The notes below the pieces were generated by a model. The model saw only the letters and a program-made list of their open reading frames with translations, did not search any database and was not told the origin of the DNA. Shown one piece after another: positions 26,073 to 64,000 of a stretch of DNA of 64,000 bases (its first letter is position 1; each line of letters opens with the position of its first letter). Position numbers and translations under genes: made by a program. The DNA is from Neoconidiobolus thromboides FSU 785 (Eukaryota; Fungi; Entomophthoromycota): contig MU626359.1 of NCBI GenBank assembly GCA_025603075.1, positions 13,842 through 77,841 on the forward strand. Direction: 5' to 3'.

Positions 26073-26712
26073 TTATCGATATCTTAGGCACAAGCAACTA
26101 AAAATGGGCGTAGCACCCGTTTTTGAAGCATCAAGAGCTTTAATACAGAACATGTTATATTCAGCTCGTAGTTTATACTTGTCGTGATAGTCAGTATTAC
26201 AAAAGTTTGTGTATATGCTGATGACTTTAAAGTAGTGTTTGTGGTAATCGGTAGTAGGTTTGCACTCTTTAAAATTTAAATCGAAGTACATTTCACTGGA
26301 AATAGGTTCACTTGCAATATTATCTCCAAAGCTTCTGATACCGTTACTATTGGTATTTCGTTGAATCAGCTCAAGTTCCTCTATTTATTCCTTAAACCTA
26401 CTGAAAACTAGCTTCTCTTCAATACTAATACACATGTTTTACTATTGATCTATGATAGAAAAGGCTATAGTAAGAGTCACTGCAGGTCTTAAGAATACCA
26501 GATAAGTCATCTTTACTTCTAGCTTGAGATATATATTATTTGAATCAACGATTATTAGCAAATGGTTGGCCGTCACAGTTATGTAAAATGATCTTTTAAA
26601 AAGATGCATAGCTTTATCATCAATAGGTCTTAAACTATGATGGCTAAAGGGGAATACTGTAATAGTGTAAGTTAAGAAAACTAAGAAGTAAACACAATAT
26701 CATTAAATTTCC
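26073..26712 (-). pseudogene. Small secreted protein family A pseudogene
   Basis: Fragments FPFSHHSLRPIDDKAMHLFKR and DLNFKECKPTTDYH...KLRAEY align to 47408-47977; start codon lost; frameshifts. Confidence 0.8.
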
Positions 26713-26804
26713 TTTTCGTTTATATAGTTTGGTAGATAGTCCTGTTTTATGTTTCCAAAATTAAACCCTTAATGAGTGATTACTTTGTGTTCAGTAAGTT
26801 CGAA

Positions 26805-26906
26805 ATATGGGGATGTATTTTTTTGTTTAAGAATTTTACTAACCTTTCCACTCAAATAACGCTTAAAAATAGAAAAGTAATGAAGCCAAAAAAAACATCC
26901 TCATAT
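26805..26906 (+). mobile_element. MITE-like element
   Basis: ATAT-GGGGATGT...ACATCCTC-ATAT. Confidence 0.9.
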
Positions 26907-28142
26907 TATACTTAAATTAGCTATAATGGCTCAATTTGAATTTAACTTTGTTTGTTTAAACTACAAGGCGTTATCTACAATAAAAGGTACTTCAACTATT
27001 CTGATATATTTTATGATTCTATTTGTAATTTTTTTATCAAGTCAAAATATACAAATATAGTTGCCAAATGAACTAATTGAAAAAACTGAATGCCCAGAAT
27101 TAAAACATTTGTACACAAATGATAAATATTATAATAAAACTAGTAAAAAGAGAATATAAATAAATAAAAGATTATAGAAAATTTATGTTCAATATTATGA
27201 TGTTTGTATGATTTACCTTTATTAAAAGCATTAAAAAAAGTTGTAAACTACAAGTTTTAAGCATATATTTTGAATTTTACTTATTTAAAAATGTTAATTT
27301 ATCAATAATCAATGCGTTTTTTAAACAATATATATATTGCTTATGAATATTGCTTATAATATAGTATTAATATCATAGCATAGCATTTGAATAATAAAAC
27401 AGTCAACTTTCAAATACTCCAGTCATTAAAAATAACTAATAAAATTTAACTAAATTTGACATTATTTAAAATCGTAAGCCAACCTTTAACAAATTGATTA
27501 TAAGATTTCAATTTTTTTCTTATGAATTTTCATAATATGATAATATCATTATAAATTGATCTTGAAATAATTTACATTCAATAATCATATGTTTGACTTT
27601 TATTTGCAATACCTTAACTTCATTCTCTCAGTTTGTTTAAGCTTTTTTCTTATCCTTAGAGTCCCTTCATATTTTTATTATCCTAGCTAACTTCTGGGCC
27701 ATTCAGCCTTATCGCATCAAGTTTCTACCCTTATGGCATCTAAATATCAGCTTTTTATGTAGCCATTTTATCATGCGCCTATTCGCATTTAAGTTTAGAT
27801 GTGGATGTAAAAGTTATACAGGACAGCACTATAGATTTTTAATAAAAATGAATTGAAAATTATAAGGATTCAAAATCAACATTGCTTCATCAAATAGGAT
27901 TTAAATACTTTAAAGACTAAATTATAAACAGTTGTATGGTTTAAAAATATGCAATGCTACATTTAGAATAGCTGTTTATCATACAAGTAAATTAATCGTT
28001 TAATCAATTATCAAATTTTAAATACAAATATAATAATTTTCCTTTTTAGGAAAAATTCAAAATTCAATTTCGAATCTAATGATTCAAATAGGATAAAAAT
28101 CACTCAAAATCAAGGATTTTAGAAAACTTCTTTCTTTAAATC

Positions 28143-30354
28143 ATGACTGAAGAAAATCAAACACAACCTAATGATAAAGAGTATCTTAATTTAAATTATC
28201 AACAATGGACCTTTGGAACTACAAAGAATCCAGATGAGAGTAAGCTATTTTGATTTTCAATTATTGATAAGATTATAATTAATAAAAAATAAACTAGTTT
28301 TAAATTTATTACCTGAGTTTCAATTGGATCCAAAAGAAGAAGAAGATAGTAATTCAACAGAAGAAGTAGATGAATCATTTCTTAATGAACAAAAAGAAGA
28401 TCAAGGTTTTTTAAATTATATGGCTAATTATTTGGAAAAAGTAGATGTCTCTTATTTGTAAGTTGGATGATTTATTATTATATAATTTATTTGATGTATT
28501 ATTAATTTATTAGAAAATTCAAACCTATTGATAATATAGATGGAGATAGAAAACAAAACTATCAATCTAGTTTACCACCTTTAGCTGAGGGTATTTTAAG
28601 AGGTTCGACAATGAGATATAAACAGCTGTTGACAATAAGTAAGCTCAATGAAGTTTATATAATACTTCAAGTCGTAATCTTTATATCCATTTTAGATAAG
28701 TTAACAATAGAAACAAACGATTTAAATCCAGAAAAAATAATAGAAGATTACTTAAAACCATTTGAAAATGAAGAAGAAAGTGAATTTGATCAATCTTTTG
28801 GAGTAAAAAACAATAACGACAGTAATTTTTATTTTATTTTTTATACAATTAAAATTAATAATAAATTATAAAGATATGGGTAATGAGGATGATTCGAATG
28901 AAAATGGTAAGTATAGATTATTACTAAATTATATGCATTGATATATATTCAAAATATTAAATGTATTTTTGATGTTACTAATGCTTATTATTACATACTA
29001 AATTATGCATTAATCGATTACTTATTTAAACGTAGATATATTAAATACATCGGGTACATTTGAACAAAAAGTGAAAACAGAAGAAGAAGTCAAACAGGGT
29101 AATTTAATTCAAATACATCGAAGCTCAATTGTAAAAATTTAATTAGAAAATATGAATGAATTAAAAAAATATATGCTAGAAATTAATGAATTTGAAAGTC
29201 AAATGAGTGGGGATAAAGAATATTTACCAGAAGAAGACTTGTTATATATTGATTTGGATATGACTTTAATATCTAATTCACCTTTGATGAAATTACAAAA
29301 ATTATTTGGTAAAGTAAGTAAATATGATGGATTTGATTTGATAGATAAGGATATGCTTTCGAATATATTTTATTTATTGCATAATTGTATCAAATATGCG
29401 GAATTTAAGACTTTGTTTGAAATCAATTCAAATTGTAACATAACTTTTACAGAGGATAATTTGGAAGAAGAATTTCAATCTGTTTGCACAACAATTAAAT
29501 ATGGTTTGTTAGCGACTAATTTAACACTAAGCATAGCCAATAAGTTAGAGATTAACCGATGTTTATACAGTGAAAACATTATGACTTCATCTCTAAGTTT
29601 CATACGAAATCAATTAACTTTCACATTATTTCCATCGATTGAAGTAGTCAAAGGAGGGTTTAATACAGCCAAATTCACAAATTTGTCGAAATCATTTATG
29701 AGAACATTGCAATATAATTTATCACAATTATCTAATGTTGCGTTTCAAGTTGCCAATTTTTTTCATGATTTTAAATTATTTATAAAAGATAGTGAAATTG
29801 GATTAAGTATTGTAATAACATTAAGTTATATTTGTATATCTAGTTTATTTGTGGATTTAACTGGGGGTAAAAAATACACAATATTTAGTAAAGGTTCTGG
29901 TAGTTTGTTTAAAAAACAATTCCAGGGAACTCTAGAAATTGTAAGTTTTGATTTTTTTTGTTAGATTTGCTAATTTAAGTTAATAATAATATAGATATTT
30001 ACTAATTATCCAGATCAAAGATCTTGGATACTTGAGGAAATATTAGCTTCTTTAATTAAATTACCACTAAATAAAAGAACAAGTAAAACTCATAGGTAAA
30101 TATGTTTATGATAAATATTTAAAATATAATAATTGTAATCTAACAATGATACAATACTAAACATAAATATAAATAGGTTAATTGATGGAAGATTTTTACA
30201 TTCTTCTACAGTATTAATACTTCAATTAATACAAAATATGTTTGAGAATTCTATTTCTAAATGGGTATTAGAATCTAAAGATTACCAAGAATTTGCTGTC
30301 GATCAATTTTCTCCAAAATCAAATGCATTTCGTCAAATAACTGATAAAGTAAAT

Positions 30355-30387
<33 letters not shown>

Positions 30388-33300
30388 GTAATAACAATAA
30401 TTTTTATTAACATTTTGTTATATTTGTTGTCATTTAGCTATATTCAAATTGGAAATATCATATTGAAGAAGCAAGTAAAATTATTGGATTTACTTTGAAG
30501 TATTTATTTTCAAGGTAATTTAACTATTTTGTTAACCTTATTATATTTATTTAATAGTAAATTGTAATAGAATTATAAAAAACAAAAATCAAAACGATAG
30601 TGAATATCGAATCATATTAGATAATATACTTGAAGATTCATTAACTATATTAAATTTACCAGAATGGCCAGGAGCGGAAATATTATTAAGAGTCATGACT
30701 ACAATTTTAGTTGGATTTGCTGATGATTCAACAACAGAGCAACAACTTAAAGGGTTTGCTATTGAATATCTAGGACATATAGCAGCAAGAATAAAAAAGC
30801 ATAACATTCAATCTTTAGAATCTGATTATCTTGAAGAATGTACAAAAAGTTCAAAAAGTCATGATTCAGAAATCATTGCTACTTTAGCTCAACTTCCGGA
30901 ATCGCTTTCATTATCACTTCCTATTAGTTCCATTGAAACTTTATTAGTATGCGAAGATAAAATACAATTGTATTTACAAGCACTTTCAACAGAAGATTCT
31001 TTGTATGAAGTAATTTTTATTTTGTATTTAATACTATTTTATAATAATTGTATTCTTAAAGGGAGCAAGGAAACTTCATTTGTGCCAATTTGGTATGACT
31101 CTACTTAAAATTTATCATGAGTCTACTCAAAATGATAGCAATAGTAAAGAAGTGGCAAAGCAATCATTAAATAAACGAAGTACTGAGATGATCAATTCCT
31201 ATTTAGCAAAAGTCATAGCTTTATCTTGTACTAAAAATACAATTGATTCAATTAAAGTATCTGAGCAACTAGAAACACAAAATAGAGATATTATTTGTAT
31301 ATTAAATGAAGCAATAGCCTTTAGAAAGCCATTATATCAATGTTTTAATTCAATATTATCAAGAATATTATTATGTTTGGAAATGAATGTATTATCCTAT
31401 CGATCTAAATCAATTAAAGCAATAACACAGATAGTATCTAATCATCCTGAGATAATTAATATACCAAAACTAAGATCATCAATACTTTATAGAATACAAG
31501 ATACATCAGCTTCTGTGAGAGATTCAGCAGTAGACTTGATTGGAAGATATATGAATTTAAAGCCAGAAACGATACCTGAATGTTATAAAATTGTTAGTGA
31601 AAGAGTATTAGATATTGCAACAGCAGTTAGAAAAAGAGTAGTTCGATTATTAAGGGATTTATATTCAACAATTAAAGATCGTAATTTAATGATTGACATT
31701 TGTTGTAAAATATTAAACAGAACGTATGATGATGAATTTCATGTTAGGGAATTAGCTATTAAAATATTGCAAGATATTTGGTTTATGCCATTAAAAAAAT
31801 ATAAATTACCACTTGATTATGATTTAAATACTTTAAATGATTCTAAAATAAAATTTGAAAGTATTTCCATTTTAGGGCAAAAAGAATTAATTGAAAGGGT
31901 ATCTATCATAATTGATGTTGTTAAAGTAACATGTGTATCTTTAGAAACAGATCAAGTTATTGTTGATTTTATATCCAAATCATTAGATAAACCAAAAGAT
32001 AATAAAAACGAAGCTTATAAACGATGGGGAAGTAACATGATTATGGCCAAATTAACTGTGAGTTGTTTATTAAATCAATTAGTTAATTTACCAGAAAACA
32101 TTAATGTCAATATTATTTCAAGTATATTAAAATGTATTTATACTTTTTGCTCATCAAAAAGTTCTTTAATACCAATCAATCATATACCTACTTTAGAGCC
32201 TTATTTAGGTTGTTTTAACGAACCTTCAGAGCAAATGAATATGTATTATGTATTAAAGATATATAATCAAGTAATTGCTAATGCTAGTTATAATTATCCT
32301 AAATTATTAAGCTCCATTGAAGGTACTTTATTAAATTCATTACCTAAATTATCCCCTATTGTATTATGTGAAGCTATTCCATGTTTATGTGTTGTTTCAG
32401 AAATGATTGGTAGTATTGAACTAAAGATTAGTAAATTATATCAGTCATGTATAGAACTACTGAAAAAAGAAAAGGTTAACTTTGAAAAGCATGGTATACT
32501 TTCAGCAGAAAAGAATACAATACGATTATTATTAATTTGTAGTTTAGTTAGCCAAAATATTGATAAAAAAAGAGGATCTAAAAATATTAACAGAAGATTC
32601 ATTAATAATCAAAAGCTTTTAGATGAAGTTTATGAACTTATATTATTCTTTACAAATAAGGATATGAAAATGATGGTACGATTAGCAGCTATTCAAAGTT
32701 TAGGGTTTGTTATGTTAGAATATCAAAGTTATTTTATTAAAGAAGAATCCTTTGAATTATTTTCAAATATTTTATTATCAAAAAATAAGGATATTAAATT
32801 GAAATTTTTAAATTTACTTTATGATTATTTAGCACAAGAATCGCCAACTATAACGGATATATTAAACAAAACAGAAGATAAAAAGATAATCGGTTTAGAA
32901 GATTTAATTGGTAATACAGAACAAATGGGAGAATCAAGTATCATATGTTCTGTTATGCAATATTGTTTAGAAAATATATTAAATTGTGGATTAAGTGGAA
33001 TTCATTCGTTACAAATGAGAGCATTAAAAGTAATTAAACCAATTGTTGAACAGGGTCATGTTAATCCATTAATGTGTTTACCAGTATTAATTGGCCTAAC
33101 TACAAGTGAAGATAAAAGTTTAAGTAATTTGGCTTATTTTATTTATACAAGTATAGCTATTCGATTTGAATCTATTGCTTATTCAAAAAATATTGAAGCT
33201 GTGCAAGTTACTTATCAATATCATTTAAAAGTTATGGAAAATGAGAGCCTATTTGGGTTTAGACAATCAGATAATGAATTTCCAGTGGGTTTATTAAATG

Positions 33301-34312: not shown

Positions 34313-34556
34313 AGATGATCTAGCTTACAAAAAGAATAATAAAATGTTAAAGGCTATGTTAGATATCAATGCTTATTTTCGATTATTATTTGTTTTATTT
34401 TATTTTAACTAACAGCTACAGAGTGTCTATGTTTAATATAGGATGTTCTAAATTAACACAATATAGTAAACAAAGAACCAGCTAGATAATGTTACTAAAC
34501 TTGAGAAAAAAATAGTTCAGAATGCTATAACTTATTACCTTCAAAGTAGACTGCTG

Positions 34557-34662
34557 TATGTTGAGATGTATTTTTATATCTAAGAATTTTACCAACAATT
34601 TTTCCGCTTAAATAGCGCTTAAAAAATGGAAAAAATAATGAAGTCAAAAAACACTTCCATAT
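34557..34662 (+). mobile_element. MITE-like element
   Basis: Family core ttttccgcttaaatagcgcttaaaaaatggaaaaaataatgaagtc. Confidence 0.85.
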
Positions 34663-41164: not shown

Positions 41165-42022
41165 TTTAAAACTCTAAGGTACCAAGAATATTAGCCCAAA
41201 TCGAGGTGACTGTTAGAAAATAAATAAAAACAGGAAATTAATAACTCATTACTGGTTCTATTTAAACATGGGTTGGGCATTTAATTTTGTGTCTTTTGAG
41301 TTTAACCATCGTAATTTTTTCTATTTTTATAATAACAAATATGAAATTAAATATCTCAATTCATGTTTAAATTAAACAATTAACAAGGTTTTTATAAAAA
41401 ACGGGTTTAGTCATTCAAACTTTGTTCAATAGTCGTAATATAGTAAATTTACTAACAATCCTTAATGAGGGTAAACAAATGTCTGAAAAAAATCAAATTT
41501 TTTGATTAGATCTTCATAGTAAAAAATGGCTAATAGGTTTTTAGGAACCTTAGGACTAACTTTGATACTAATGTCACTATTACTGTTTCTATTATTATTT
41601 TATGAAGTGTAATAGTGCATCTTTGAGTATAAGATAAGCTTACTACTGCTTTAACTATTTTCTTGCACTTAAAAACATATTTATGGTATTTTTGAAATTG
41701 AAATTGGGAATTTTTTCGATTGAAACTTGCTTTACATAAAATTTGATTATTTTTACTAAGTTTGTATTAAAAAATTAGACATTTATATTTATCCTTGGTA
41801 TAATCGCATTTATTTTTAAAGATCAGTTAGAATTGCTGTTATTAGTGTAAGTGTTTAGATTAACTGCTCCTGTAGCTCTTTTTAGATGACAGCCACACCC
41901 TAACATCTTATATACAGCCAAATCTATTTATTAAACTATGTAATAGCTATATTAAGTAATCATTAAGAAAGAAATGCTAATTTAAAAATTAATATATTGC
42001 ACAAACCATTTCACTAAAATCC

Positions 42023-42129
42023 ATATGGGAGTGTTTTTTTTGATTTCATTATTTTTTCCATTTTTAAAGCACTATTTGAGTGGAAAGATTGTTAGTAAAA
42101 TTCTTAAACACAAAAAAACACCCCCATAT
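42023..42129 (-). mobile_element. MITE-like element
   Basis: ATAT-GGGAGTGT...ACACCCCC-ATAT. Confidence 0.9.
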
Positions 42130-42324
42130 GCTAAGTTTAAACTTATTAAAAAAGACTATGATAAGTATACTCATTAAATATATCGAAGTAACTAACGTAA
42201 GTCTTAGCTGAAAAATACACTTGGATTTAAAATAAATACAGCTAAACCATTTTAAATTGTTATAATTAATTGAACTATAATATTTGAGTTTGCTATCCAT
42301 AAGGTAACTATATATTAAGGGGCC

Positions 42325-42430
42325 ATATGGCGATACATTTTTGTGTTTAAATATTTATTAACAATTTTTCTGCTCAAATAATACTTAAAAGATGGAAAAA
42401 ACAATGAAGCCAAAAAAAACAGCCTTATAT
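42325..42430 (+). mobile_element. MITE-like element inserted in a family A promoter
   Basis: ggggcc-ATAT-[98 bp]-ATAT-ttttaaaa, versus the empty site ggggcc-ATAT-tttttaaag at ~47335. Confidence 0.92.
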
Positions 42431-42477
42431 TTTTAAAATCATATAAGATAAAAATCATCTAATGTTATTAACTGAAA

Positions 42478-43100
42478 ACGAACTTTAATACTGTTGCTTC
42501 TCCTTTTTCATTTTGATTATCTTTTATTGCTCTAGAATTTCCTTTTAATTACATGTACTGAGGGTATTAATGATAAAATCATCAGTAACTTTAAAGGATT
42601 GTTACATACATGTAATGCCTAACTGATTGCCGATGATTGCCAACTTGAATGAAAAATGTTTCGAGATAGAAATAAAAAAGATATAGCTGACATTATTGAG
42701 TACTATAATAACTCATACTATGGCCTTTCTTTTAAGGCCCGATACCCAAATAGATAATTTAATAGTGAGCAGGTGCTAGTTTTCAGTAGTTTTAAGGAGA
42801 CACTAGACGAATTGGCCCTATTAGTTAAAATAGCGAGGACGATAGCGTCAGAAGCAAAAGCGTCAATGATAAAGGCGATATTTCAAATTGACTTATTGCT
42901 ATTACAACCAACTTTGAACAGATTTAAGGAGTGCAAAACAAAGTTGAATTTGAAAAGTCTCAAGGCGGAATCAATAAAGTATCTGGAGAGTTCGCGAAAG
43001 GAAATAGAAAAATTTATTGTAGATCATATCCTAGATATTTGAATATATCTAAAAAAAAATCCACTTCAAGTCTCTTTTTAACCACTTGGACTAATAATGT
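42478..43100 (+). pseudogene. Small secreted protein family A pseudogene
   Basis: ACG in place of the start; FKGLLHTCNA*LIADDCQLE*KM...NSYY...RFKECK. Confidence 0.85.
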
Positions 43101-43981
43101 ACTCTACAGCCAGTCTAAAGAGATTTATTTAGGAATTTCATTCATTTTCATTTAAACAATTTAAATTTAAATACAATTAAGCTTAAACAAAACAACCACA
43201 TTGTTCTTTGAATCAACCTAGCATTATATATGCAATAAATTTCTATTTCTATGAAATGCTTAGTAGTTAGTTTAAAATTTAAAATTTTAGTTCTTTGTTA
43301 AAACGTAAGCTAATGCCATAAATCCAATAATTATAGTCAAATCGATTTATGCTAGATTTCGTATAAAATATAATCTTAAACAAGGACAAGTATATTAGTA
43401 AAATCTATATAAATGATGTATATTTTTATAATATTTTTAATGTTTATTGTTTTAGTTATCATAAACTTTTGTTGATTTTCATATATAAATCAAGTAAGCT
43501 GATTAAAATTTTAGTACTATTAGAAACTTAATAGTGTTTTCATTATGTCAATTTCCAGTGCATATACATCATATACAATATTACAAAATATCAGACCATC
43601 AATTTTTATGATTCTTCATTATAAAACAATAAAATGATAAATTGTAAAAATAAATGATATGCTATTCAAATATTTAAATTATTTTGTAATACTGTAACTC
43701 TTTATTTGATTTAGTATGATTTTTTTGATTGTAAATTTTTTATTTATTTAACAAAGCTACATTCGAAAATTATAATCGTAAGATATACAAAAGTAGTTAA
43801 AGGATCCTTTGTCAAAACTAGATCCTATAGTTCAAACAAATAGAGTTAGATCTAATTCAAATCAGTATAACTACTTCAAGTTCGATATTTTATTTTGCTG
43901 GTTAAAGGGTTTTTACTTATCAAAGAAGCTCCATTTTTAAAAGCATGTAAGTAAAAAACCATGCAACTGTATCAACAAAAA

Positions 43982-44560
43982 ATGAGATTTGACAATTTTG
44001 CCTCTACTTTTTTGATTTCTTTAACTTTTATTGTTGCTACCCTCCCTCCTAATGATCATGGCTTAAAGCCCATTGGTGATAAAATTCTTAATATCGTCGA
44101 AGTATTTTTATTTGTCCAGGATGGCCAAAAAATTGCTGATAACTGCCAGCCTAAACGAAGTATTTCACAAGTTCAGAGTATATATGAATTTAATTCCATC
44201 TTTGATGCCTACGGGGAATCTCACCTCAATGTTTTATATCAAAATCCAGTCAGAATCAACGAATTTGATACTTAATGACATTAAATCATAGAGGTAATCA
44301 AATTGGCCCAAGATCAATTTGCTATTCATAGAGAAAGAATAAAAAAATAGCCTTTAAAAGTGAATCTATTGGTACCGAAATAAGCCTCGGTCAAATATTC
44401 AAAGGGTGTGTATCTTCCAAAGAATATCATGTAATCTGTGTTCAGCTTGTAGATATATCCAAATGTTCTTGGGATAGAGGTAAACTCAATATAAGAAAAT
44501 TACGCTCTAAATTTGATATAACCAAAAAGAAGCTTTTGATATTATAAAAAGGTCTGAAAG
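43982..44560 (+). pseudogene. Small secreted protein family A, truncated or pseudogenised copy
   Basis: MRFDNF signal peptide, DHGLKPIGDKI, IADNCQ; premature stop at 44275; downstream FKGCVSSKEYH in another frame. Confidence 0.8.
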
Positions 44561-45254
44561 TATTGATTTTTAATTACTTGTGCTTAAAATGACTTATGAA
44601 GTTGCTCTAAAGATCATTTAAAGTGTCTTTCGAGTTAATTAAACAATATTATATAGTTAGTTTCAATTGTAATATTATGACTTTAGATACATAAATATTT
44701 ATATTGATTTAAGGTTAGATAGCGTAGTCTGAGGTAATTTCATTTAATTAATAGTAAAAATTTCATTTATTTGTAAGACTTTTTACTAAGGTAAAAATTC
44801 AAAAAATAATAAGTATAGCCATTGAAACTTATGCTGATAGTACATTTGTATATATATTTCAGTGTTTAAATGTGTAAGTTAAGTTAAACTTACATTGTTT
44901 TCATATATAAGTTAGGTAATTTGAGTTAAACAAATGGAAATGTTTTTTATTAATTGTCTTTTTTGCTATTTTTTTAAATTAGAAATTAATTAGCCATTAT
45001 ATTGTTTAAGTTTCGATATGTGCTAAATAACTGTTCATTTTAATAGAAATTAAATTAATAGCCTTGAAATCACTAGATTGAACAAGCAACTATAAATTCA
45101 TCACTTGTCAGCACAAACTTGAACTTAAGCATCTGCCTTAATTAATTTTTGAAAAAATAGTAAAAAAGGGTAAAATAAAAAACATTCCCAAATACCAAGC
45201 AAACTTTAATGGTATTTCTATCTTAATAAAACTCATAGCTTTAATTCTTTAAAC

Positions 45255-45349
45255 TGTATAATGTGTTTTTGAATTTATTAAGAATTTTTCTGCTCAAATA
45301 GCACTTAAAAGATGAGAAAAGTGATAAAGCCAAAAAAATTATCTCTGTA
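45255..45349 (+). mobile_element. MITE-like element (degenerate)
   Basis: tttttctgctcaaatagcacttaaaagatgagaaaagtgataaagccaaaaaaa. Confidence 0.75.
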
Positions 45350-45427
45350 CATATTATATTAAATGTCACTATTTTTTGTTTTTATAATAACTTAGCGTAT
45401 CAATTAAAGTATACTACATAAAGTATA

Positions 45428-45529
45428 ATATGGGGTGTATTTTTTGGTTTCATTACTTTTTACATTTTTTAATCGCTACCTGAGCAGAAAAATTCTTAAT
45501 AAAATTAAACAAAAAATACATCCTCATAT
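45428..45529 (-). mobile_element. MITE-like element
   Basis: ATAT-GGGGTGT...ACATCCTC-ATAT. Confidence 0.87.
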
Positions 45530-45685
45530 AGTGTAATTTTAGTTAATATCATTTGAGTTGTTATAATAAAATTAAAAGCTGCAAACCATTTTATCAAAGA
45601 ATGTAAAGCAGATAGAATTAAAATTGATTCAAGTAATTATAGTAAGTAGAGTATGCGTTTTAAGTTTCCTGTAAGTGGGGTAATC

Positions 45686-45791
45686 ATATGGGGATGTATT
45701 TTTGTATTTAAGAATTTTACTGACAATTTTTCCACATAAATAGCGCTTAAAAAATGGAAAAATAATGAAACTAAAAAAAACAGCTCCATAT
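45686..45791 (+). mobile_element. MITE-like element
   Basis: ATAT-GGGGATGT...ACAGCTCC-ATAT, just upstream of the 45868 pseudogene. Confidence 0.9.
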
Positions 45792-45867
45792 ATTGAGGAG
45801 TAATATTTGTAGAAAAATACATAGCAAAAATTTACTACTTTAAGATGTTTAACTATATCAATCAAAG

Positions 45868-46380
45868 ATGAAGTTTAATGCTTTTATTTGGCTTTTACTA
45901 CTGAAGCATCCAGATCTAAATATCATGGTTTAAGAACTATTGGTGATGAAGTTATCGAAAGTTTTAAGAGATTATTGTATATCCATGATGATCAATTAAC
46001 TACCGGTAACTGTTAAATTGAATAAAAGAATGTACAAGCTGGAAAAAGAGAGGAATTCGATATTATCTTTCGAGCTTGTGATCAGACTTTTAATGATCTT
46101 TTAAATCTAAATCAACTTAATATAAATGAATTTAATATTAAGCTACAGAAAACTCAATGCAGAATTAAAATAGCTCGAGCAATTCACTGCTACCAATGGA
46201 GCTACCAATGGATATAAGAATATGATAAATAATGGAGGAAATAACAATAGTAATATCGGAAACGGGTATGCTGCCAGCAAACTCAACTTAGAATAAAGTT
46301 GAAAAGACTGCAAATCTTGCGTTGGTTGTAATGGATTCCTCACTAGAGCCTTCAGAATATTTAGATTGAAGTTAAATTAT
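45868..46380 (+). pseudogene. Small secreted protein family A pseudogene
   Basis: MKFNAF, frameshift, YHGLRTIGDEVIESFKRLLYIHD...NC*IE*K...ACDQ...KDCKS. Confidence 0.85.
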
Positions 46381-46828
46381 TACTCTCATAGAGAACAACG
46401 ATTAACCATTGAGGTTGTATATATCTTAAGAATTAAAAATGTTAGGTGTGACCTTAAACTTGTTCCTTCCTTAGCTACTTGTACGAAAGAAGCTATAAAA
46501 AGCTATTCTAAATATCGTTAAATTATTTTTTAATATAACTTTTCAGAATAGATCCAAAGAAAGTAAATTTCACTAAATATTTAATGATATTTTAAATTTC
46601 AATTTGATGATTTTACGTGCAAATAAGAATATTAATATAATATTTAATTAATATAGCTTAATTTAACATAAAGTTCTCAAAGGCGATAGTTCTATCCATC
46701 CTTACGATATTTCATCAATAATAAAACTCTAAAGCAATCGACACAGATATAAAAATCAATGCTAATATGCATGTTTTCTAAAAAATTTGTAATTGTTAAA
46801 TGTTTAAATTAAGCTAATTATTTTCAGT

Positions 46829-46931
46829 ATATAAAGCTATTTTTTTTGGTTTCATACTTTTTCCATTTTTTGAGCGTTATTTAGGCGGAAAAATTGTTAA
46901 TAAAATTGCTAAGCAAAAATATATTCCCACT
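46829..46931 (-). mobile_element. MITE-like element (degenerate)
   Basis: Reverse family core ttccattttttgagcgttatttaggcggaaaaattg. Confidence 0.75.
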
Positions 46932-47310
46932 TATTGTATATTTATAATAAATATTACAAGCAATAAAAGCCAGTTATAATTTTAAAAAAATAAAAGAAAA
47001 ATAAGAACCTGTTTTTTTCCACTCATTTCCTTAAATATCTTCAATAAAGGCAAGCTGTGCATACGCTATAATATTGAGTCTATATTATTTATGTAATATT
47101 ATTTATTCGCTATTTTTATTCAACTAGGTGGTCATATTATGTAAATATATTTGTTAAGCTTAGAATATAAAAAATACAAGTATACTCGCGGAATATGCCT
47201 AAGTAGATAAAGTGCTCCTTATTGGAAGTGGATTCCCTCAGTTAAAATAAATAAAGCTAACCTAAAATTAAATCAACCCAATTAATTCAAGTATTATTTT
47301 TAGTTTGCCG

Positions 47311-47376
47311 TCCACGGAATAATTATGTATTAAGGGGCCATATTTTTTAAAGTATATAAGACAAAATTGTATCGAT
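47311..47376 (+). promoter_or_regulatory. Conserved upstream block of family A genes
   Basis: TCCACGGAATAATTATGTATTAAGGGGCCATAT...TATATAAG; homologs at ~42296, ~49040 and 63686. Confidence 0.6.
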
Positions 47377-47407
47377 TAAAGACATCATTGAACTTCACCA
47401 AACAAAA

Positions 47408-47977
47408 ATGAAATTTAGTACTACTACTTTTACTTCTTTAATTTGCTTAACTTCCTCTGCTGCAGCATTTTCTTTTAATCACCATAGCTTAAGAGGTATT
47501 AGTGACGAAATCATTGGTGGCTTTAAGGGATTATTGCATATCCGTGATGTCCAGCCAATTGCCAATGATTGTCAATTTGAGCAAAAAATGTCCCAAGTTA
47601 AAAATAAAGAAGATTTTATTAACACTATTAAGTACTGCGACAACTCTTACTATGATCTTTTGTATGAAGGTAAATACTCAAGTAAGGAACTTAATAGTGA
47701 ACGGGAACAGCTTTTCAATAAATTTAAGGTAGCCTTAGAGAAACTCGATCCTAATCAAAAGAACAATGAAATTACTTTTGAAGATGGGCCTATTAATTAC
47801 GTATTAGACCTTAATAAAAGATATAAAGAATGTAAATCTCCCACTGATTATCGTGGACTCTACAATGAAGTCAAAGATACATATGATCGCCTTAGAGAAA
47901 ATCGTTATGTTGATCAGAGCCGATTACAAGTTGAATACGCAGACATCAAAAACAAATTTTCTAGTGTTCTAAATTAG
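47408..47977 (+). CDS. Small secreted protein, family A (intact, 189 aa, unknown function)
   Basis: Signal peptide ending ..SSAAA, HHSLR motif, three Cys, charged helical body, intronless. Confidence 0.88.
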   Translation: MKFSTTTFTSLICLTSSAAAFSFNHHSLRGISDEIIGGFKGLLHIRDVQPIANDCQFEQKMSQVKNKEDFINTIKYCDNSYYDLLYEGKYSSKELNSEREQLFNKFKVALEKLDPNQKNNEITFEDGPINYVLDLNKRYKECKSPTDYRGLYNEVKDTYDRLRENRYVDQSRLQVEYADIKNKFSSVLN

Positions 47978-48537
47978 ACTTTTAATATTGGGTTTTAACT
48001 GCTCGCCTTTAAAATGGCTTATAAAGATACTTTAAGGATTATTTAGTTTATTCCTAAATTATTATAATAAATATAGTTACAACTTTATTATATGTCCAAT
48101 AGTTTATTTACGCTTTTACTTTGCAGCTTTAATTATATAAATGTACTTTTGATATTCAGACAAACAATATAGCTTAACTTTGGATAATGTATTCAATGGT
48201 AAGTTTTGTGTATTTGCCCTCTCCTTTTATTAAAAAATAAATCTTTGGATAGCAATAAGTATAAATGTAGAAGTTCATGCTAATAATTATATTATTTATA
48301 CTTGATATCTAATGTTTGTTTACTAAATAGTATATACATTTTGAGTTAAAACACTTACTGTTTCTTATAACAACTTAGGCTATATTAATTACAATACATC
48401 TATATTTAATATAATAGCAGTATTTTAATTGATATTGATTGATCTACTATAAAGAATCAAAACACAAAAGTCATTTTACCAGTGAGTGTAGGCCAAATAT
48501 AACTAAACCATTCCTGCTAACTACAATCAATTAAACT

Positions 48538-48635
48538 ACATGGAAATGTTTTTTTAGTTTCATCGCTTTTTCATTTTTAAAGTTCTATTGAATGAAAAAG
48601 ACAGTAAATCTTTGAACGAAAAAGGCATCTTTATG
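48538..48635 (-). mobile_element. MITE-like element (highly degenerate)
   Basis: tggaaatgtttttttagtttcatcgctttttcatttttaaagttctattg. Confidence 0.6.
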
Positions 48636-48859
48636 TGCTATAATATTGAGTTTAAATTACTATAAAATCTTATCTGTTTATGTTTTTCGACTTAATTCAT
48701 TATAATTTTAACTACTTGAATTATAAAATTTTTTATCAAAACATACTTTTTGTTTAGTTATATTATATTGGACGATTGTATTTATCAAATTTAGACTTAA
48801 ATAAAAAAGATGTACTCATAGAACATACTCAAGTAGATAAAATACCTTTTGTCAGAAGT

Positions 48860-48963
48860 ATATGGGAATGTATTTTTTATTTAAGAATTCTACCAACAAC
48901 CTTTCCACTCAAATTAGCGCTTAAAAATGGAAAAGTAATGGAATAAAGAAAACATCGCCATAT
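48860..48963 (+). mobile_element. MITE-like element inserted in a family A promoter
   Basis: gaagt-ATAT-[96 bp]-ATAT-ccttgtagtt, versus the empty site gaagt-ggat-tccctcagtt at ~47225. Confidence 0.9.
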
Positions 48964-49119
48964 CCTTGTAGTTTGAACAAATAAAGCTAAACTAAAACTA
49001 AATCCATGGAATTGATTTGAGTTCATATTTCGTTTTCCTTCCACGGAGTAATTATGTATTAATAAGCCATATTTTTAAAGACATGTAAGATAAAAATTAT
49101 TGAACTTTATTAAATAAAA

Positions 49120-49450
49120 ATGAAATGTATTACTATTACTTTTACTAGTATAGCGTCTCCTTTTAACTACCTTGGTTTAAGGGCTATTGGTGATTTTAAA
49201 GGATTATTACATATTCACGAGAGCTAGTCAACTGCTGATGATTATCAATTTGGGTAAAAAATGTCTCAAGCCAAGCTAAAGATAAAGAGAATTTTATTAA
49301 GATTATTAAATATTGTGACAACTTATTCTATGATCTTTTGTATGATGGTAAATATTCAAGCAAGGAACTTAATAGTGGATGGAGGCTGGTTTCCAGTAGA
49401 TTCAAGGAAGCATTAGACGAACTTACTCCTAATTAAAAAAATAATAGTGT
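49120..49450 (+). pseudogene. Small secreted protein family A pseudogene (close relative of 47408)
   Basis: MKCITITF...LGLRAIGDFKGLLHIHES*STADDYQFG*KMSQ...YCDNLFYDLLYDGKYSSKELNS; deletions and stops. Confidence 0.9.
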
Positions 49451-49588
49451 TGTTTTTTGAAAATGTAACTGCAGGTTTAATGGGATTTCCATGATAGTTT
49501 AAAGTAGTATCATTACGATAAAAATTTATTTAAATTATATCGCTAATTTTTGTATATCAATTTTATTTGAAATATTATAGCATAGTAA

Positions 49589-49696
49589 AATGTGAAGATG
49601 TATTTTTGTGTTTAAGAATTTTACTAACAAATTTTCCACTTAAATAGCGCTTGAAAAATGAAAACAATAATGAAACTAAAAAAAACACTCCCATGT
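49589..49696 (+). mobile_element. MITE-like element
   Basis: Family core. Confidence 0.85.
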
Positions 49697-49712
49697 AATA
49701 CTTAATTAAAGC

Positions 49713-49820
49713 ATATGAGGGTGTATTTTTGTGTTTTTGAATTTTACTAATAATTTTTCCGCTCCAAATAGCGTTTAAAAGATGGAAAAAAAGTGATGAA
49801 GCTAAAAAACACCCCCATAT
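49713..49820 (+). mobile_element. MITE-like element
   Basis: ATAT-GAGGGTGT...ACACCCCC-ATAT; a solo end fragment follows at ~49883-49906. Confidence 0.88.
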
Positions 49821-50287
49821 GTAAATACATTTTTGAGTTTAAGAGCTCTACATAAGGTACATTTAATACCATTTAAATTGACAAAAAAAACAAAGACATC
49901 CCCATATGTTTGTAGGAGAAATTAAACGGTTTTGTTAATTTTTATTTGAAATTTAAAATCAAAAAATGTAAAAAATAGAATCTTGAGCTCAGATTAAACT
50001 ATTTAAAAATAAGATAGAATTAAAACTACTCCTCTACAAATAAGTTAGCAATATATTAATTACAAACTTAAGATTTGATTTGGTAAAACATCTGCTTTAT
50101 TAACTAAACACTATTGGTTTGTTTATGACAATAAAAGTATAAAAGAGATAATAATAATAACCCCAACTTCCACAAAAGTATCAAATAATACAAAATTGTA
50201 ACCCAAACTATAACAAAGACATAATACATCTTGATTATTTATTTAAATTTCTTTTTACAAAAATAATTTAATAAAAAGTACTTTTAC

Positions 50288-56264: not shown

Positions 56265-56373
56265 AGAGATGAAGAAAAATAAAGAAACGTAAATACAAAT
56301 GATAAAAAATTAAAACAAATATCGAATTTTAGTTACAATATATACTTTATTTTACAACTTATTTAAACTTTAC

Positions 56374-59300: not shown

Positions 59301-60045
59301 ATTATATGATGTAACAATTAAAACAACTTACTAATTCATTACAATGTGGTTTATATGCTTTTAATAACTTATCATGTTCGCCATAAGACATACTAAATAA
59401 GGTAGGCAAAAGGTTCAAAGCCCCATGATCTGAAGAGCTCAAATTTGCTGCACTCTCTTTACTTGGTTGTATACATTGATTTATCCTTTGTAAAGTATTT
59501 GCATAGCCTGGATGAGAGTTAAACTCCAAGTTAAGGATCTGTCTTAGTAAACTAGCGAACAATGTGATGTGCTCATTTGTGATTGCTTTTATTTCTTGAT
59601 GCGATAAATTTTTAGTTTCTGTTGACACCGGGTTACTGTACTTTGTAAATATCATAATTAAAGCTTCAATATTGCCAATCTTTTGTGTCACTTCTCTAGT
59701 GGAAACACCGGCTAAAAAATTATGGAAACTTTTTAAACAGATAATAAAGTTTTTATTGTTTTTAATTGATTGAAAGTTGTTGATCAGGGATGACTTTTTA
59801 ATATCCCCTATATGTTTTTTTAACGACTTGACTAGCTGCTCTAATAGTTTTTCATTTTGCTTTGGGTTCGCTTGACTGTTTTGATTACTATCTCCGGCAC
59901 CATCTTTATTATTTAATTGGTTTAGTCGCTCAGTTAAACACTCTGTAAGGATAACACAGCGTAACACAAAGGGATATAATTCATTTTCGTCAACCGAAAA
60001 ATCCATAAAGCTTCGGTTGGTGCCATTATTTACTTCTACTCCCAT
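56374..60045 (-). CDS. MUN (Munc13 homology)/C2-domain protein (YOR296W/Ync13-like), multi-exon
   Basis: Large helical ORFs; HSSSVDDL MHD motif; C2 segment DAYTIL..PRWNE..VEVFDKD..DDLCG. Confidence 0.78.
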
Positions 60046-60207
60046 TTCTTATAAAATTAGCTAAAAATGATAAGCTTGAATTTATGTTTTTTGTTAGAGT
60101 TCTGAATGTTCTTGCCCAATAAAATGCATGTAGTGATTTCTCCATTTTGTTCCAGCTAATAAATTAAAAACAAAATTTTATAATAGTTTAGATTAAATAT
60201 CTTTATT

Positions 60208-60567
60208 TTAATTTTTCAAAAACTCATCAATATCCTCAAGGAACTCTGCATCTTCTTTTTCATCTTCCATCTTTGTTTTGTCGTCTACCACATCTTTATT
60301 TTGATAAGGTTTCTTTTGATAAGGTCTTTTTTGATAAGGTTTCTTTCTTTGATATGGATTCTTTTGATACGGTCTCTTATTATATCTATTTCCAGATGAG
60401 TAGCCCATCGTAGGGTAGGGATTTTCACATGTTCCAGGAACTGTAATTGTGACTTTTTCTGTAGCGACCACCACTTCGGAAGTCACTGTTTCCGTTTCAC
60501 ATTTATCATTGGCATAAAGAAATGGCACGTTAACTAAAGCTATAAGGATAATTTCGTATAATCTCAT
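60208..60567 (-). CDS. Small secreted protein with a (K/R)xPYQ repeat block and acidic tail
   Basis: Signal peptide from the ATG at 60567 (MRLYEIILIALVNVPFLYA); two Cys; five PYQ units; D/E-rich C-terminus. Confidence 0.75.
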   Translation of the reverse strand: MRLYEIILIALVNVPFLYANDKCETETVTSEVVVATEKVTITVPGTCENPYPTMGYSSGNRYNKRPYQKNPYQRKKPYQKRPYQKKPYQNKDVVDDKTKMEDEKEDAEFLEDIDEFLKN

Positions 60568-61413
60568 TAAACTAATACAAATCAAATAACAAGTTAAAAA
60601 ATACAACTTTTTGTTATATATCATGTACTATAACCATGATAAACAAAATTAATAGGATTATCAGTATGAGTTTAGTTATTAAGTTTTTTAGGGTGATTAT
60701 CGTTTAATTTTAGCGATCTTCTAAGGTTGAGTTTGAGCTCACTTCAAAAGTTAATTCTCTTTTATTGGCTGGGAGTTGCAAAATTCGTAGTGACTGTTAT
60801 TTGAAGGTTAAAGTGATGATTTCAGTGAAGTAAAATTTAGTAACAATTTTCGAAAGCGAATGTAATGTAAATTTGTAAAAAATACATTTCTTAAGTTTTA
60901 AAAAAAAGAAATTAAATTTGAATAATATTTAAAGTATAAAATAGTATTTTTATTACAATATGTACCTTTTCAATGTTTTTATTAAAAAATAATAGCGCTT
61001 TGTATTTAAAATATGAAAAAATCGATATAAACTTATTAAAATATTCACTTTTAAATTAAATTAGGCTTTTTGACAGAAGCATATTGGAAAAAGGTGTATT
61101 TTAATTTAAAAATAAATAAAACGTGCCATAAAATAGCTTATCTTATTAAACATACTTTATATATAAAGGGATGGTTGTTATATTTTTTAACAAACTTAAT
61201 ACTTGTATTGCTTTTTCTAATTTTAAAATAATTTAAATGCATTCATGAAATCCTTTGAAGAAGTATGACTACGATTTAAGAGAAATAACTGATGATGTGG
61301 TTTCTTTTAAGCCATAAAAATATTAAAAACACTATTAGAATATATAACTTTTATATTTGTATAAAAAAATTAATACTTTTCAAAAGCTAAAGTAAATTAT
61401 TCAGTGTATGCTT

Positions 61414-61510
61414 CATATGAGGATATATTTTTTAAGAATTTTATTAACAGTTTTTCTAAAATAGTGCTTAAGAAAATGGAAAGTGATAAAACCAAAAAAC
61501 ACCCCCATAT
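61414..61510 (+). mobile_element. MITE-like element
   Basis: ATAT-GAGGAT...ACACCCCC-ATAT. Confidence 0.85.
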
Positions 61511-61559
61511 GCTATTTTATACACACTATAAGTACAGTTGAAAGCAATATTAAACGCCA

Positions 61560-62400
61560 AAAAATCTAAGTCAAATATTAGTGCTCTAAAAGGTGATGAT
61601 CAAGTTTTAACTGAAATTCTCTCAAATAATATTCTGAATGTTTCAAATAAGAACTATAACATGTATCAAGCATCATTCAACATCCAATAACGATGGATTC
61701 GTCAATGTCTTGCTCTATATCTTCTAAATCAAAAGGTAAATTTGAAGTATATCGTATAGAAGGTTATCCCATATATAATTGAAAAGCTTAAATATCATTC
61801 AGTATTCAAATTAAAAGATCATAAAGGGATGTTTTTTTGTTTCACTACTTTTCCACTTTTTAAGCGCTATTTGAGTGGAAAATTTGTTAGTGAAATATTT
61901 AAACATAAAAATATATCCACAACTTAAAATTGGATTCAATAATGAAGATAGAGAATTGACATTGCAATAAAAATGGGAAACTAACGGACATGAGGTTAAA
62001 ACATTAAAAGTGTGGCATAACTAAAATTACCATACGTTTAATATTATTGAATATCAGAAACGAGTGTATTCATAAAGAGTTAGGAGAAAGCTTAAAAACC
62101 AAGTTTAATGTTTACAGAAAAGTTGTTTCTTGTATCCATTTATTAGATCCTGATCAAATCCGCTATTACAATACTGCATTGACATTTCTTATGCTAAATA
62201 ATGAAGTCTTATTTAATAAGTTGGGAATGCCAACTAAACTTTCAGTCAATGGAGATTCTCCGCCAACTATTTGTACATATGGGCCAGCTAAAATCGAACG
62301 CTTTCATTGTAGGAGTGCTGAACGTAAGGGTAATCTGTGCAAGGCTGCTTAAACTTTGGAAAAGTCATTTGATTCTATGGAAATTAGCACAAGCGTTAGT
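61560..62400 (+). pseudogene. Unknown family B, degraded copy 2, interrupted by a MITE
   Basis: KVWHN..KELGESLKTKFNVYR..LLDP..YYNTALTF..NNEVLFNKL; stops upstream. Confidence 0.6.
61820..61922 (-). mobile_element. MITE-like element
   Basis: Reverse family core ttccactttttaagcgctatttgagtggaaaatttgttag. Confidence 0.85.
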
Positions 62401-62525
62401 GTAAATATTAAAAATAAAAAATAAATAGCAGATATAGCTTTACATTTTAATTGATGTTTGAATTTGTATATTTTTTAGCAGCCATATTGACTTTGAATTC
62501 TTTATTTAATAAATTAATCTGTATC

Positions 62526-62632
62526 AAATGGGAGTGTTTTTTTTGGCTTCATTACTTTTTCCGTCTTTTAAGCACTATTTAAGTAGAAAGATTGTTAGCA
62601 AAATTCTTAAACACAAAAATACATCCCCAAAT
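62526..62632 (-). mobile_element. MITE-like element
   Basis: atgggagtgttttttttggcttcattac...cttaaacacaaaaatacatcccc. Confidence 0.88.
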
Positions 62633-62769
62633 GTTTTACTATTTTTGTAGTTTTAATTTGTTATCCAACTTTAAATGAGTAAACATAAGTAACTTATTTA
62701 GCTTTTGTATTATGTTTAATATATATAAATAAGAGAATATAGTTTACAACGAATCTGTCTGTTTAGAGT

Positions 62770-63250
62770 AAAATTCATATGACCAAAGCTTATAGAGGTT
62801 TCTGTGTGGATAGAATCAAGGGTAAAAAAGTATAGTAGAAACATAATAAATATGATGTTGGTATGGCTGCGGTCTAAAGCGATTTTAGCTAATGATGAAA
62901 GGATTTGTGAAATTGCTGTTTTGTATAATTTTGTTTTTTGATACAAAAGAGAAGCCCATATCTTTTTTTATGGGTTGACCTAGATTTCAGGCCATTGGAG
63001 TTTAGAACCTAGTTTGTCAGAAAAATGATTCAATAGAATGCTGAAAAAAATGATTTAGGAAAGGCTAATAAACATGATTTCTACAATGCTTTTGTAGTTT
63101 TAACCCTCAAAGCCACTGATAAATTTGTGAGCTTTCCAACGTGTATAGGTAAGAGCAAAACAAGTATTTATTTTATCAGCCATAATGATTTGATTTTAAA
63201 TTTGGATCCAAAAAAGCAAATTATTTTTAATAAATTCTTATTTTACTTTC
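62770..63250 (-). pseudogene. Decayed Tc1/mariner-like transposase remnant
   Basis: Ordered fragments CFA..VGKL..NYKSI, KLQWPEI*VNP*KKIWASL (cf. WPxxSPDLNPIExxW) and LILSTQKPL*ALVI (cf. LIxSMPxRLxAVI). Confidence 0.5.
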
Positions 63251-63770
63251 TTCTTTATTAGTATTTGAATAAAATTCACTATTAGTTTCATTAACGTAAA
63301 ATTTAATATTAATCTACTTTAGCCTTTAACCTCAACTTTGGCATTAAATATTAGAATTAAATGATGCTAATTTCTCATGTAGTATAATTTAGAATCTCTT
63401 AATAGTACAATAAATTTTGAATCTAAAATTCAATGTATATAACTAATATTCATACTATCTTTATTAAATATAATATAACTTACAAAAAATACCACTATGA
63501 TATAAGAGTTTGATAAATGACATTTGGCTTTATAATATTTTTACCTTTGAAGAACCAACTTATAAATAGATTTTTTTAAAGAACAGTTCAAGAATAGTTA
63601 AAAAAGTAATCCCTTAAATGACATCCAAATGCTACGTGAATCCAAGCAATGGAAAAAATTTAAAAAAAGTTCTAATTAAATTTAAACGGAGTAATTATAA
63701 TCTCCGTCCAAAGCATTATAAAACCAATTTCAAATATTTTTTACAGTTAACCTTGAATCAAATTAAAACA

Positions 63771-64000
63771 ATGAAATTCAATACCATCTTATTATCTGCT
63801 ATCACTTACTTTGCTGCAAGTTCTTTAGCTTATCACACTAAACATCATGGTGTAAGAGCTATTGGCGATGAAATTATCGGTGGCTTTAAAGGATTATTAC
63901 ATATCCGCGGCGGACAATCAATTGCTGATCATTGCCAGATTGAGCAAAAGATTTCTCAAGTTACAAAGAGAGAACAATTTGATACCATTCTTAATACTTG
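63771..64000 (+). CDS. Small secreted protein family A, open to the window edge (3' truncated by the window)
   Basis: MKFNTILLSAITYFAASSLAYHTKHHGVRAIGDEIIGGFKGLLHIRGGQSIADHCQIEQKISQV..; absent from the ORF track because its stop lies outside the window. Confidence 0.85.
   Translation, partial: MKFNTILLSAITYFAASSLAYHTKHHGVRAIGDEIIGGFKGLLHIRGGQSIADHCQIEQKISQVTKREQFDTILNT

Follow-up and report, generated by a model that had tools for sequence, protein, structure and literature searches.

A cluster with one intact, one probably intact, and five decayed genes for a predicted secreted helical-bundle protein in Neoconidiobolus thromboides

Neoconidiobolus thromboides is an insect-pathogenic zygomycete. 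The 24.6-Mb, 799-contig assembly of strain FSU 785 contains on contig C102 a 64-kb stretch (C102:13842-77841; "the window" designates this whole stretch of analyzed DNA, and positions are counted from its first base) with seven copies of a gene for a small, predicted secreted protein. The copy at position 47408 is intact, five copies are dead, and the seventh, at 63771, is probably intact, as judged from its continuation on another contig. The domain family of the encoded proteins is undescribed; the genomic pattern in which the copies are arranged is well known. The window is very AT-rich, with a GC content of 22-34%, and its end is also the end of the contig.

Copies of the gene and their state

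A tblastn search with the 189-amino-acid (aa) product of 47408-47977 found seven family copies in the window and none further, with E values of 1e-18 to 1e-26 for the matches to paralogues. Together with a six-frame search, it recovered every copy listed by the first-pass annotation, an earlier reading of the same DNA from its letters and reading frames. The six-frame search of the whole genome added an eighth copy at the end of contig C648. The copies in the window and the landmarks of the intact gene are as follows.

26073..26721, minus strand: pseudogene (tblastn match 26157-26684), about 16 kb from the array, without a start codon, with 5 in-register stops and frameshifts
42475..43009, plus strand: pseudogene (onset 42475/42563), start codon lost, 7 in-register stops, many small insertions or deletions
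43982..44272, plus strand: pseudogene, about 100 codons open, stops at codons 98-101, second Cys of the conserved pair gone
45831..46175, plus strand: pseudogene, ATG at 45868 retained, frameshifts, stops at codons 56, 59, 137, and 139
47353..48086, plus strand: transcription-unit landmarks of the intact gene (TATA-like box, AATAAA, polyA site)
47408..47977, plus strand: intact gene, 189 aa (open reading frame [ORF], AlphaFold2 models, contigs of four runs)
49120..49457, plus strand: pseudogene, 24-nt and 15-nt in-frame deletions, frameshift near codon 62, stops at codons 49, 59, 117, and 176
63771..64000, plus strand: 5' part of a second family member, 76 codons, open to the contig edge, no defect

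Five copies, at 42.5, 44.0, 45.8, 47.4, and 49.1 kb, are located on the plus strand one behind the other at regular spacing and form a same-strand tandem array. Their flanks are shared, too: the promoter region 47240-47407 of the intact gene aligns to 48970-49119 and to 42227-42328. Ordinary genes separate the 26-kb, the 42- to 50-kb, and the 63-kb parts of the cluster. The first-pass annotation had likened the cluster to arrays in transposon-rich compartments; with these genes between its parts, it is no such compartment in the usual sense of the term.

Every copy was aligned at the DNA level to the intact coding sequence (CDS) at 47408, and stop codons were counted in register. The copies at 26, 42, 43, 45, and 49 kb contained 5, 7, 3, 4, and 4 in-register stops, respectively, a total of 23, in addition to many insertions or deletions that were not multiples of three. 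The start codon was gone in two of them, the 26-kb and the 42.5-kb copy, and the 43982 pseudogene had no recognizable second module in frame. Since the stops are situated within homologous, alignable coding sequence, the broken stretches are not introns. In this copy-by-copy alignment, the five broken copies were 57-62% identical in nucleotides to the intact CDS, and the 63771 copy was 70% identical; in a pairwise comparison of copies, the 49120 pseudogene was the closest relative of the intact one, with 76% identity. The same-strand array in which most copies are dead, as described before, was thereby confirmed, and all five pseudogenes found in the genome belong to one short, two-module branch of the family and are located inside the window.

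The 63771 copy is indeed open to the edge of the window, as noted earlier, but this edge is the contig end, and the gene extends into contig C101. Over its final 56 bases, C102 matches the reverse complement of the C101 end exactly, and the frame remains open for 192 codons down to a stop (1426-2001, minus strand, of C101:75859-77859, locus L018). The exact overlap of the contig ends and the frame that is open to its stop indicate that the 63771 gene is probably intact. If joined, the product would have about 250 aa and would comprise a pair of Cys residues separated by 21 residues (C-x21-C), a linker of the type (NNGG)n, a second module, and, behind a KR site, a tail of basic character. The end of C648 overlaps the C101-end sequence exactly by 36 bases, so that three contig ends meet inside one family gene (63944-64000 on the side of the window). 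C102 and C648 are identical over their last approximately 97 bases and differ upstream. There are consequently two 5' halves and one assembled 3' half, which suggests either two genes with a nearly identical 3' part that was collapsed by the assembler or a recent gene conversion.

The intact gene, its transcripts, and its product

The 47408 protein begins with Met-Lys, continues with a hydrophobic segment some 15 residues long, and has A-A-A in front of the predicted cut; from this signal peptide (about aa 1 to 20), judged by inspection, the protein is predicted to be secreted. A conserved N-terminal segment follows at aa 24-46, composed of H-H-S-L-R and a 17-residue block that ends in R. Module 1 comprises aa 47-117 and contains Cys55 and Cys77 in the spacing C-x21-C, and module 2 comprises aa 126-189 and contains a single Cys. 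The motifs named by the first-pass annotation, which were the signal peptide, H-H-x-L-R, the IGDEIIGGFKGLLHIR block, two Cys residues, and KECKS..DY, are all real. The single Arg of H-H-S-L-R aligns with an RR in longer paralogues described below, and the protein is probably trimmed at this basic site. The mature protein of this branch has a grand average of hydropathicity (GRAVY) of about -0.95 and an isoelectric point of 5.2-6.0.

With a family alignment, AlphaFold2 modeled the whole 47408 protein with a predicted local distance difference test score (pLDDT) of 73.5. In this model, residues 50-113 and 128-188 each form a three-helix bundle (block pLDDT values of 80-95), and the first 46 residues are poorly defined. 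A single module reached a mean pLDDT of 90 and a predicted template modeling score (pTM) of 0.75, and showed a short, broken first helix and two long helices. Each module is therefore predicted by these models to be an up-down-up three-helix bundle. Cys55 is placed in helix 1 and Cys77 in helix 2 of the model, and the pair would form a disulfide that staples helix 1 to helix 2, which the invariant spacing of both residues fits. In Foldseek searches of the PDB, these models yielded only generic helical bundles, with E values no lower than 0.37 (whole model) and 1.5 (module). The best Z score of a wide VIA-align search with the whole model, 8.3, was below the level that is meaningful for helical bundles in this tool. 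Matches by fold in the ESM Atlas were ribosome-recycling-factor-like and phage three-helix bundles. Because this fold is common, it carries no information on function.

Transcript contigs of four runs (X1, X2, X3, and X5; three studies) were placed on the region 43700-49650. The contigs of X1 cover the intact gene without any difference to the reference, and X1 is very probably the sequenced strain and its transcriptome very probably that of an axenic culture. Coverage of the intact gene by contigs in such a culture means that its expression needs no host signal. The gene is also covered in X2 and X3, which come from a second study and another strain or a close relative, and by a 515-nt contig (47497-48011) in X5, a polyA metatranscriptome of the third study. 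The first-pass annotation had made its proposal dependent on expression of the intact copies, and the intact copy is transcribed. A TATA-like box is situated at 47353-47361, 47 nt before the ATG, and an AATAAA at 48068-48073 downstream of the CDS. The polyA addition site is at about 48086, as given by a loose end of 23 A's in run X2, 13 nt past the AATAAA.

Transcription of the pseudogenes was not uniform. The region 43899-44893, which holds the 43982 pseudogene, was without a contig in all four runs. One X1 contig covers 45881-46780 in the 45.8-kb pseudogene, and the 49.1-kb pseudogene is weakly transcribed (48682-49625). The contig depth in X1, which is a poor measure of expression, was 57 and 24 in the regions of the 45.8-kb and 49.1-kb pseudogenes, compared to approximately 3300 for the intact gene. 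In the transcript of the 49.1-kb pseudogene, a 64-nt GT..AG intron at 49085-49148 was spliced in two runs from different studies. This splicing event takes away the former start codon of the pseudogene; its occurrence in X1 and X2 indicates that both runs represent RNA and not contaminating DNA.

Between strains, the CDS of the intact gene contained four synonymous differences (47464, 47668, 47671, and 47710) and one nonsynonymous difference (47550, V48A), and the first approximately 60 nt of the 3' untranslated region contained seven changes. This pattern fits purifying selection, albeit with small numbers. A contig of X3 matches the reference from 47417 on; its 26 letters before this position (47391-47417) differ from the reference and contain no ATG, and the 5' end and start codon of the gene may differ in the X3 strain. 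Downstream of the gene, an X1 contig (47613-48641) skips 50 nt at 48309-48358. The ends of the skipped sequence, CT..AC, are those of a canonical minus-strand intron, which points to a spliced transcript, convergent or antisense, that lies immediately downstream of the intact gene and possibly overlaps it. No minus-strand ORF of 40 aa or more was found at 48309-48358.

The wider family and the age of the array

The copies in the window represent the short, two-module branch of a larger family with at least nine further loci in the same genome, two of which are possibly halves of one gene. The 189-aa protein matched contigs C241 and C114 weakly, and these matches revealed intact, predicted secreted proteins with lengths of 271 and 308 aa. 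Further members have 478 aa on C35, 332 aa on C45, 237 aa on C127, and 137 and 208 aa on C114, and a partial gene is located on C179. The family module comprises about 70 residues. Where the Cys pair is present, exactly 21 residues are always found between both Cys, followed by x3-Y-x2-L-L and, in most modules, then by (L)NSEW; some modules, those on C127 and in the homologue from Massospora cicadina, are without any Cys. In long members, two to four modules are strung on linkers rich in Ser/Thr/Pro or Asn/Gly. In the short branch, the signal peptide and the conserved N-terminal segment are followed by a module with two Cys, a short linker, and a terminal module; in an alignment with the long members, this branch matches their last two modules from end to end. 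In the region C114:28858-29034, the 137-aa and 208-aa secreted members share an N-terminal R-G-L segment. Both end in a short basic tail after KR (..LKVLKL and ..SKILKL). The part of the 63771 gene on C101 encodes a comparable tail after KR, and a short run of basic residues likewise closes the Massospora protein.

To date, the family has been seen only in Entomophthorales. A 71-position module profile scored against 1.84 billion representative proteins gave six matches: three came from the N. thromboides genome, two were apparently spurious, and one was a hypothetical protein of M. cicadina (E 1e-11). The two spurious matches, an ankyrin-repeat protein and a protein with C-x13-C repeats, the spacing of which differs, look like false positives. 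Apart from one Massospora protein, word-based protein searches returned proteins of N. thromboides only, and a scan of metagenome contigs found no relative. The Massospora locus (JAKSZP010002827.1, 10001-10696 of the extracted locus) is one uninterrupted ORF of 231 codons with a good signal peptide. Its product has the same architecture as the short branch, including the N-terminal segment and the K-S-P-x-D-Y of module 2, and contains no Cys; in the deposited model, KAI0244039.1, 12 codons of the signal peptide are dropped as an "intron." The copies had been proposed as a candidate lineage-specific family; the family is not an orphan of one species, as the Massospora homologue shows, and it extends to the further loci in the genome.

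The absence of a recognized domain from these predicted secreted proteins was also borne out. Pfam contained no family for the 189-aa protein at E values of up to 10 and nothing above the curated cutoffs for nine further members; matches of the linkers to the Pfam families New_glue and Mucin were due to low complexity only. A sequence profile search against solved structures gave a best E value of 0.065, which is not meaningful, and a feature search in the ESM Atlas with two members gave no usable match.

Pairwise DNA identity among the copies was 51-79%, and the synonymous divergence (dS) from the intact copy was 0.5-1.5. These values are saturated or nearly so, and the duplications are therefore old. 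The "rapid turnover" of the first-pass annotation does not fit copies that are 51-76% identical at the DNA level and separated by such dS values. The ratio of nonsynonymous to synonymous divergence (omega, dN/dS) relative to the intact copy was 0.22-0.28 for N-terminal pieces without damage; among the pseudogenes, three had values of 0.32-0.43 and two had values of 0.61-0.65, indicating that most dead copies spent much of their history under constraint. As a test for pseudogenes, dN/dS was uninformative with a saturated dS. The array combines disabled copies with one expressed and selected copy and can be regarded as a birth-and-death array.

The stops were not evenly distributed. Eleven of the 23 in-register stops were located on the 8 Gln codons among the 189 codons. 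Codon 59 was stopped in four copies, and each of codons 49, 56, 59, and 117 was affected in at least two and at most four copies, in some cases by different stop triplets. The 42.5-kb and 49.1-kb copies share stops at codons 49, 59, and 117, and the 26-kb and 45.8-kb copies share those at codons 56 and 59, all of them at Gln codons. In a tree of the copies, the intact copy was grouped with the dead 26-kb, 42.5-kb, and 49.1-kb copies (support 0.99) and adjoined the 49.1-kb copy (weak support). This position among dead copies makes their deaths look independent. The shared stops were considered as proof that copies were duplicated when already dead; this was rejected, since parallel C-to-T changes are simpler in view of the tree and the Gln codons, although node support is weak. 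The shared stops are best read as parallel C-to-T changes in an AT-biased genome, a mutation regime that leads to repeated Gln-to-stop changes.

The array had also been described as interleaved with miniature inverted-repeat transposable elements (MITEs), and this is correct. In a blastn census, 26 merged intervals of the window belonged to one MITE family; its members are about 110 bp long and have terminal inverted repeats that begin with CATATGGG. About ten copies (8 merged intervals) are situated in 41.9-50.0 kb, so that the density is 0.99 intervals per kb in the array compared to 0.32 in the rest of the window, a threefold difference. The MITE copies of the array, without an assigned strand, are located at the following positions.

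42022-42130: MITE copy
42324-42442: MITE copy
45259-45549: two MITE copies
45685-45796: MITE copy
46816-46955: MITE copy
48537-48598: MITE copy
48860-48963: MITE copy
49597-49821: two MITE copies

In the 42.5-kb copy, the MITE at 42324-42442 separates the promoter remnant (42227-42328) from the former start, and the corresponding site of the intact gene is empty. Contigs of the RNA runs match many of the MITE copies.

Possible function and comparison with known systems

We consider it fairly probable that the locus is an old, mostly decayed array of the short two-module branch and that its product is a secreted, trimmed, soluble helical-bundle protein that acts extracellularly. The protein would enter the secretory pathway via its N-terminal signal peptide and would be trimmed a few residues further on at a basic site; in the long paralogues this site is RR, a canonical dibasic site of the Kex2 type, and in the short branch it is one Arg. 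The released product would be a soluble protein of 17-20 kDa, hydrophilic and mildly acidic. Outside the cell, it may serve in binding or as a component of a coat at the fungal surface or the host interface, and would be neither an enzyme nor a pore former. Modules on Ser/Thr/Pro- or Asn/Gly-rich linkers are a layout typical of glycosylated extracellular or wall-associated fungal proteins, and the beads-on-linker layout of the long paralogues is the reason to propose the family as an extracellular binding or coat component. Chances that the family as a whole has an extracellular binding, coat, or matrix role are about even, and they are lower for the short branch. With respect to the history of the array, gene duplication would have come first, the copies would then have died one by one, and the MITEs would have accumulated in the dead DNA.

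Several points weigh against this explanation. The short branch does not possess the Ser/Thr-rich linkers, and the coat role may not transfer to it. Secretion and processing are predictions from the sequence, and the monobasic site of the short branch is not a canonical Kex2 site. No match by fold or sequence provides a functional lead, leaving the architecture as the pointer to a surface or binding role. Internal nodes of the copy tree are weakly supported, and some of the shared stops could have been inherited. Contig depth, finally, cannot rank the expression of the copies.

Alternatively, the family may be composed of host-directed effectors or toxins that are secreted into the insect and act against its immunity or its cells, with birth and death of the copies as the trace of an arms race. 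This was the proposal of the first-pass annotation and is purely inferential; we regard it as unlikely. Predicted secretion, the missing Pfam domain, the limitation to insect-pathogenic Entomophthorales, and an array rich in pseudogenes with diverged paralogues would all agree with it. The most suggestive detail is an R-x-[IL]-x-[DE] motif right after the signal peptide, which is kept in the short branch and in Massospora and is similar to export motifs known from Plasmodium and, to a lesser degree, from oomycetes. However, the intact gene is covered by contigs in the very probable axenic-culture transcriptome X1, and the old duplications and the architecture common to two distant genera are unlike those of fast-evolving effectors. 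Moreover, omega between intact copies was 0.2-0.5, so that purifying selection dominates, and the fold searches revealed no likeness to a known toxin fold.

A precursor of a released bioactive peptide is a further, quite improbable explanation. Here, the 17-mer between two Arg residues would be cut out as an amphipathic membrane-active or signaling peptide, and the modules would be its carrier. The 17-mer is the best-conserved stretch of the protein, nearly identical between the 47408 and 63771 copies when the rest is about 50% identical, and its Massospora counterpart is flanked by TR and KR. In N. thromboides, however, the flanking sites are monobasic, the 17-mer is wholly absent from the long paralogues, and the modules are conserved and confidently folded, which is needless for a mere carrier. 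An antimicrobial peptide was rejected in particular: the helical hydrophobic moment of the 17-mer was 0.26 compared to a mean of 0.25 for shuffled sequences, 45% of which reached 0.26, and its net charge was about zero, unlike that of an antimicrobial or cytolytic peptide.

Even less probable, by analogy with other pathogens, is that R-x-[IL]-x-[DE] constitutes a protease-recognized export or host-targeting signal (PEXEL/RXLR-like) in front of modules that would act inside insect cells. The motif is present in the intact copies and in most of the decayed ones, and as R-G-L-I-E in Massospora. We know of no effector delivery signal in zygomycete insect pathogens, and such a signal, if true, would mean a convergent host-translocation system in these fungi. 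That the feature is an artefact composed of chance ORFs in AT-rich DNA or of a misassembled repeat, with no true gene family behind it, can be dismissed with near certainty: the DNA is very AT-rich here (25-30% GC) and two family copies are located at contig breaks, but the E values of the paralogue matches, a polyadenylated transcript of the intact gene in independent studies, a full-length homologue in another genus, and a module that folds at a pLDDT of 90 refute it.

The secreted helical-bundle protein that we favor can be compared with known systems. In the Kex2-processed repeat proteins (KEPs) of fungi, repeats are parted by dibasic KR or RR sites; the long paralogues possess one RR after the leader and linkers without dibasic sites, and the short branch possesses a single Arg only. 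The HsbA and Mp1 families, which are secreted helical proteins of fungi that bind lipids and in which a five-helix bundle would be expected, gave no Pfam match, and AfMp4p appeared in Foldseek with only an E value of 0.5 and a template modeling (TM) score of 0.22. Generic three-helix bundles, such as domain I of the ribosome recycling factor, BAG, MIT, or the spectrin repeat, have the same up-down-up course, with TM scores by query of 0.6-0.79 to the single module. These proteins, however, are intracellular and without the Cys pair, and none reached a Foldseek E value below 1 with the single module, which indicates a shared common fold instead of homology.

Oomycete RXLR-WY/LWY effectors are composed of a signal peptide, an Arg-containing processing motif, and helical-bundle modules that can be repeated in tandem, and they occur in clustered families with pseudogenes. 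The layout described here is analogous, with a predicted signal peptide, an Arg motif, and small helical bundles in a cluster that includes pseudogenes. The motif, however, is H-S-L-R or R-x-I-x-D and not R-x-L-R followed by EER: R-x-L-R was found in no copy (the motif is H-H-S-L-R or H-H-G-V-R), and no EER follows it. The order of the conserved Tyr and Trp differs from that in WY/LWY domains, and a predicted disulfide staples the bundle here. No WY or LWY domain was found in Pfam, and none of the matches of the module profile among the 1.84 billion representatives came from an oomycete.

Among fungi, orphan families of secreted proteins commonly form clusters that include dead copies, and the pattern itself is unsurprising. 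The present array illustrates clearly how genes die slowly when mutation is AT biased and Gln codons are repeatedly changed to stops. The family adds an undescribed, foldable, and presumably extracellular domain, a predicted disulfide-stapled three-helix bundle of about 70 residues, to the catalogue of these poorly studied insect pathogens. The short, intact, transcribed 47408 gene is a clear experimental target, and should the family turn out to act on the host or to build the fungal surface, it would provide one of few molecular handles on the biology of Entomophthorales.

The closest comparison is that with the small secreted proteins (SSPs) of fungi. Surveys of zygomycete secretomes contain hundreds of unassigned secreted orthogroups (PMC9391592); Chang et al. 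(2022; PMC9391592) listed over 180 SSP orthogroups that are indicative of Entomophthoromycotina, and more than two-thirds of the shared SSP groups were without assignment. The proteins described here possess no curated domain, as is demanded of fungal SSPs, and they resemble these lineage-specific orthogroups in having a predicted signal peptide, a length of less than 300 aa, no Pfam domain, and an occurrence in one subphylum. The survey, however, is a catalogue without module, fold, or array, whereas a C-x21-C three-helix bundle, a modular family, an array of pseudogenes, and transcripts are available for the family in N. thromboides.

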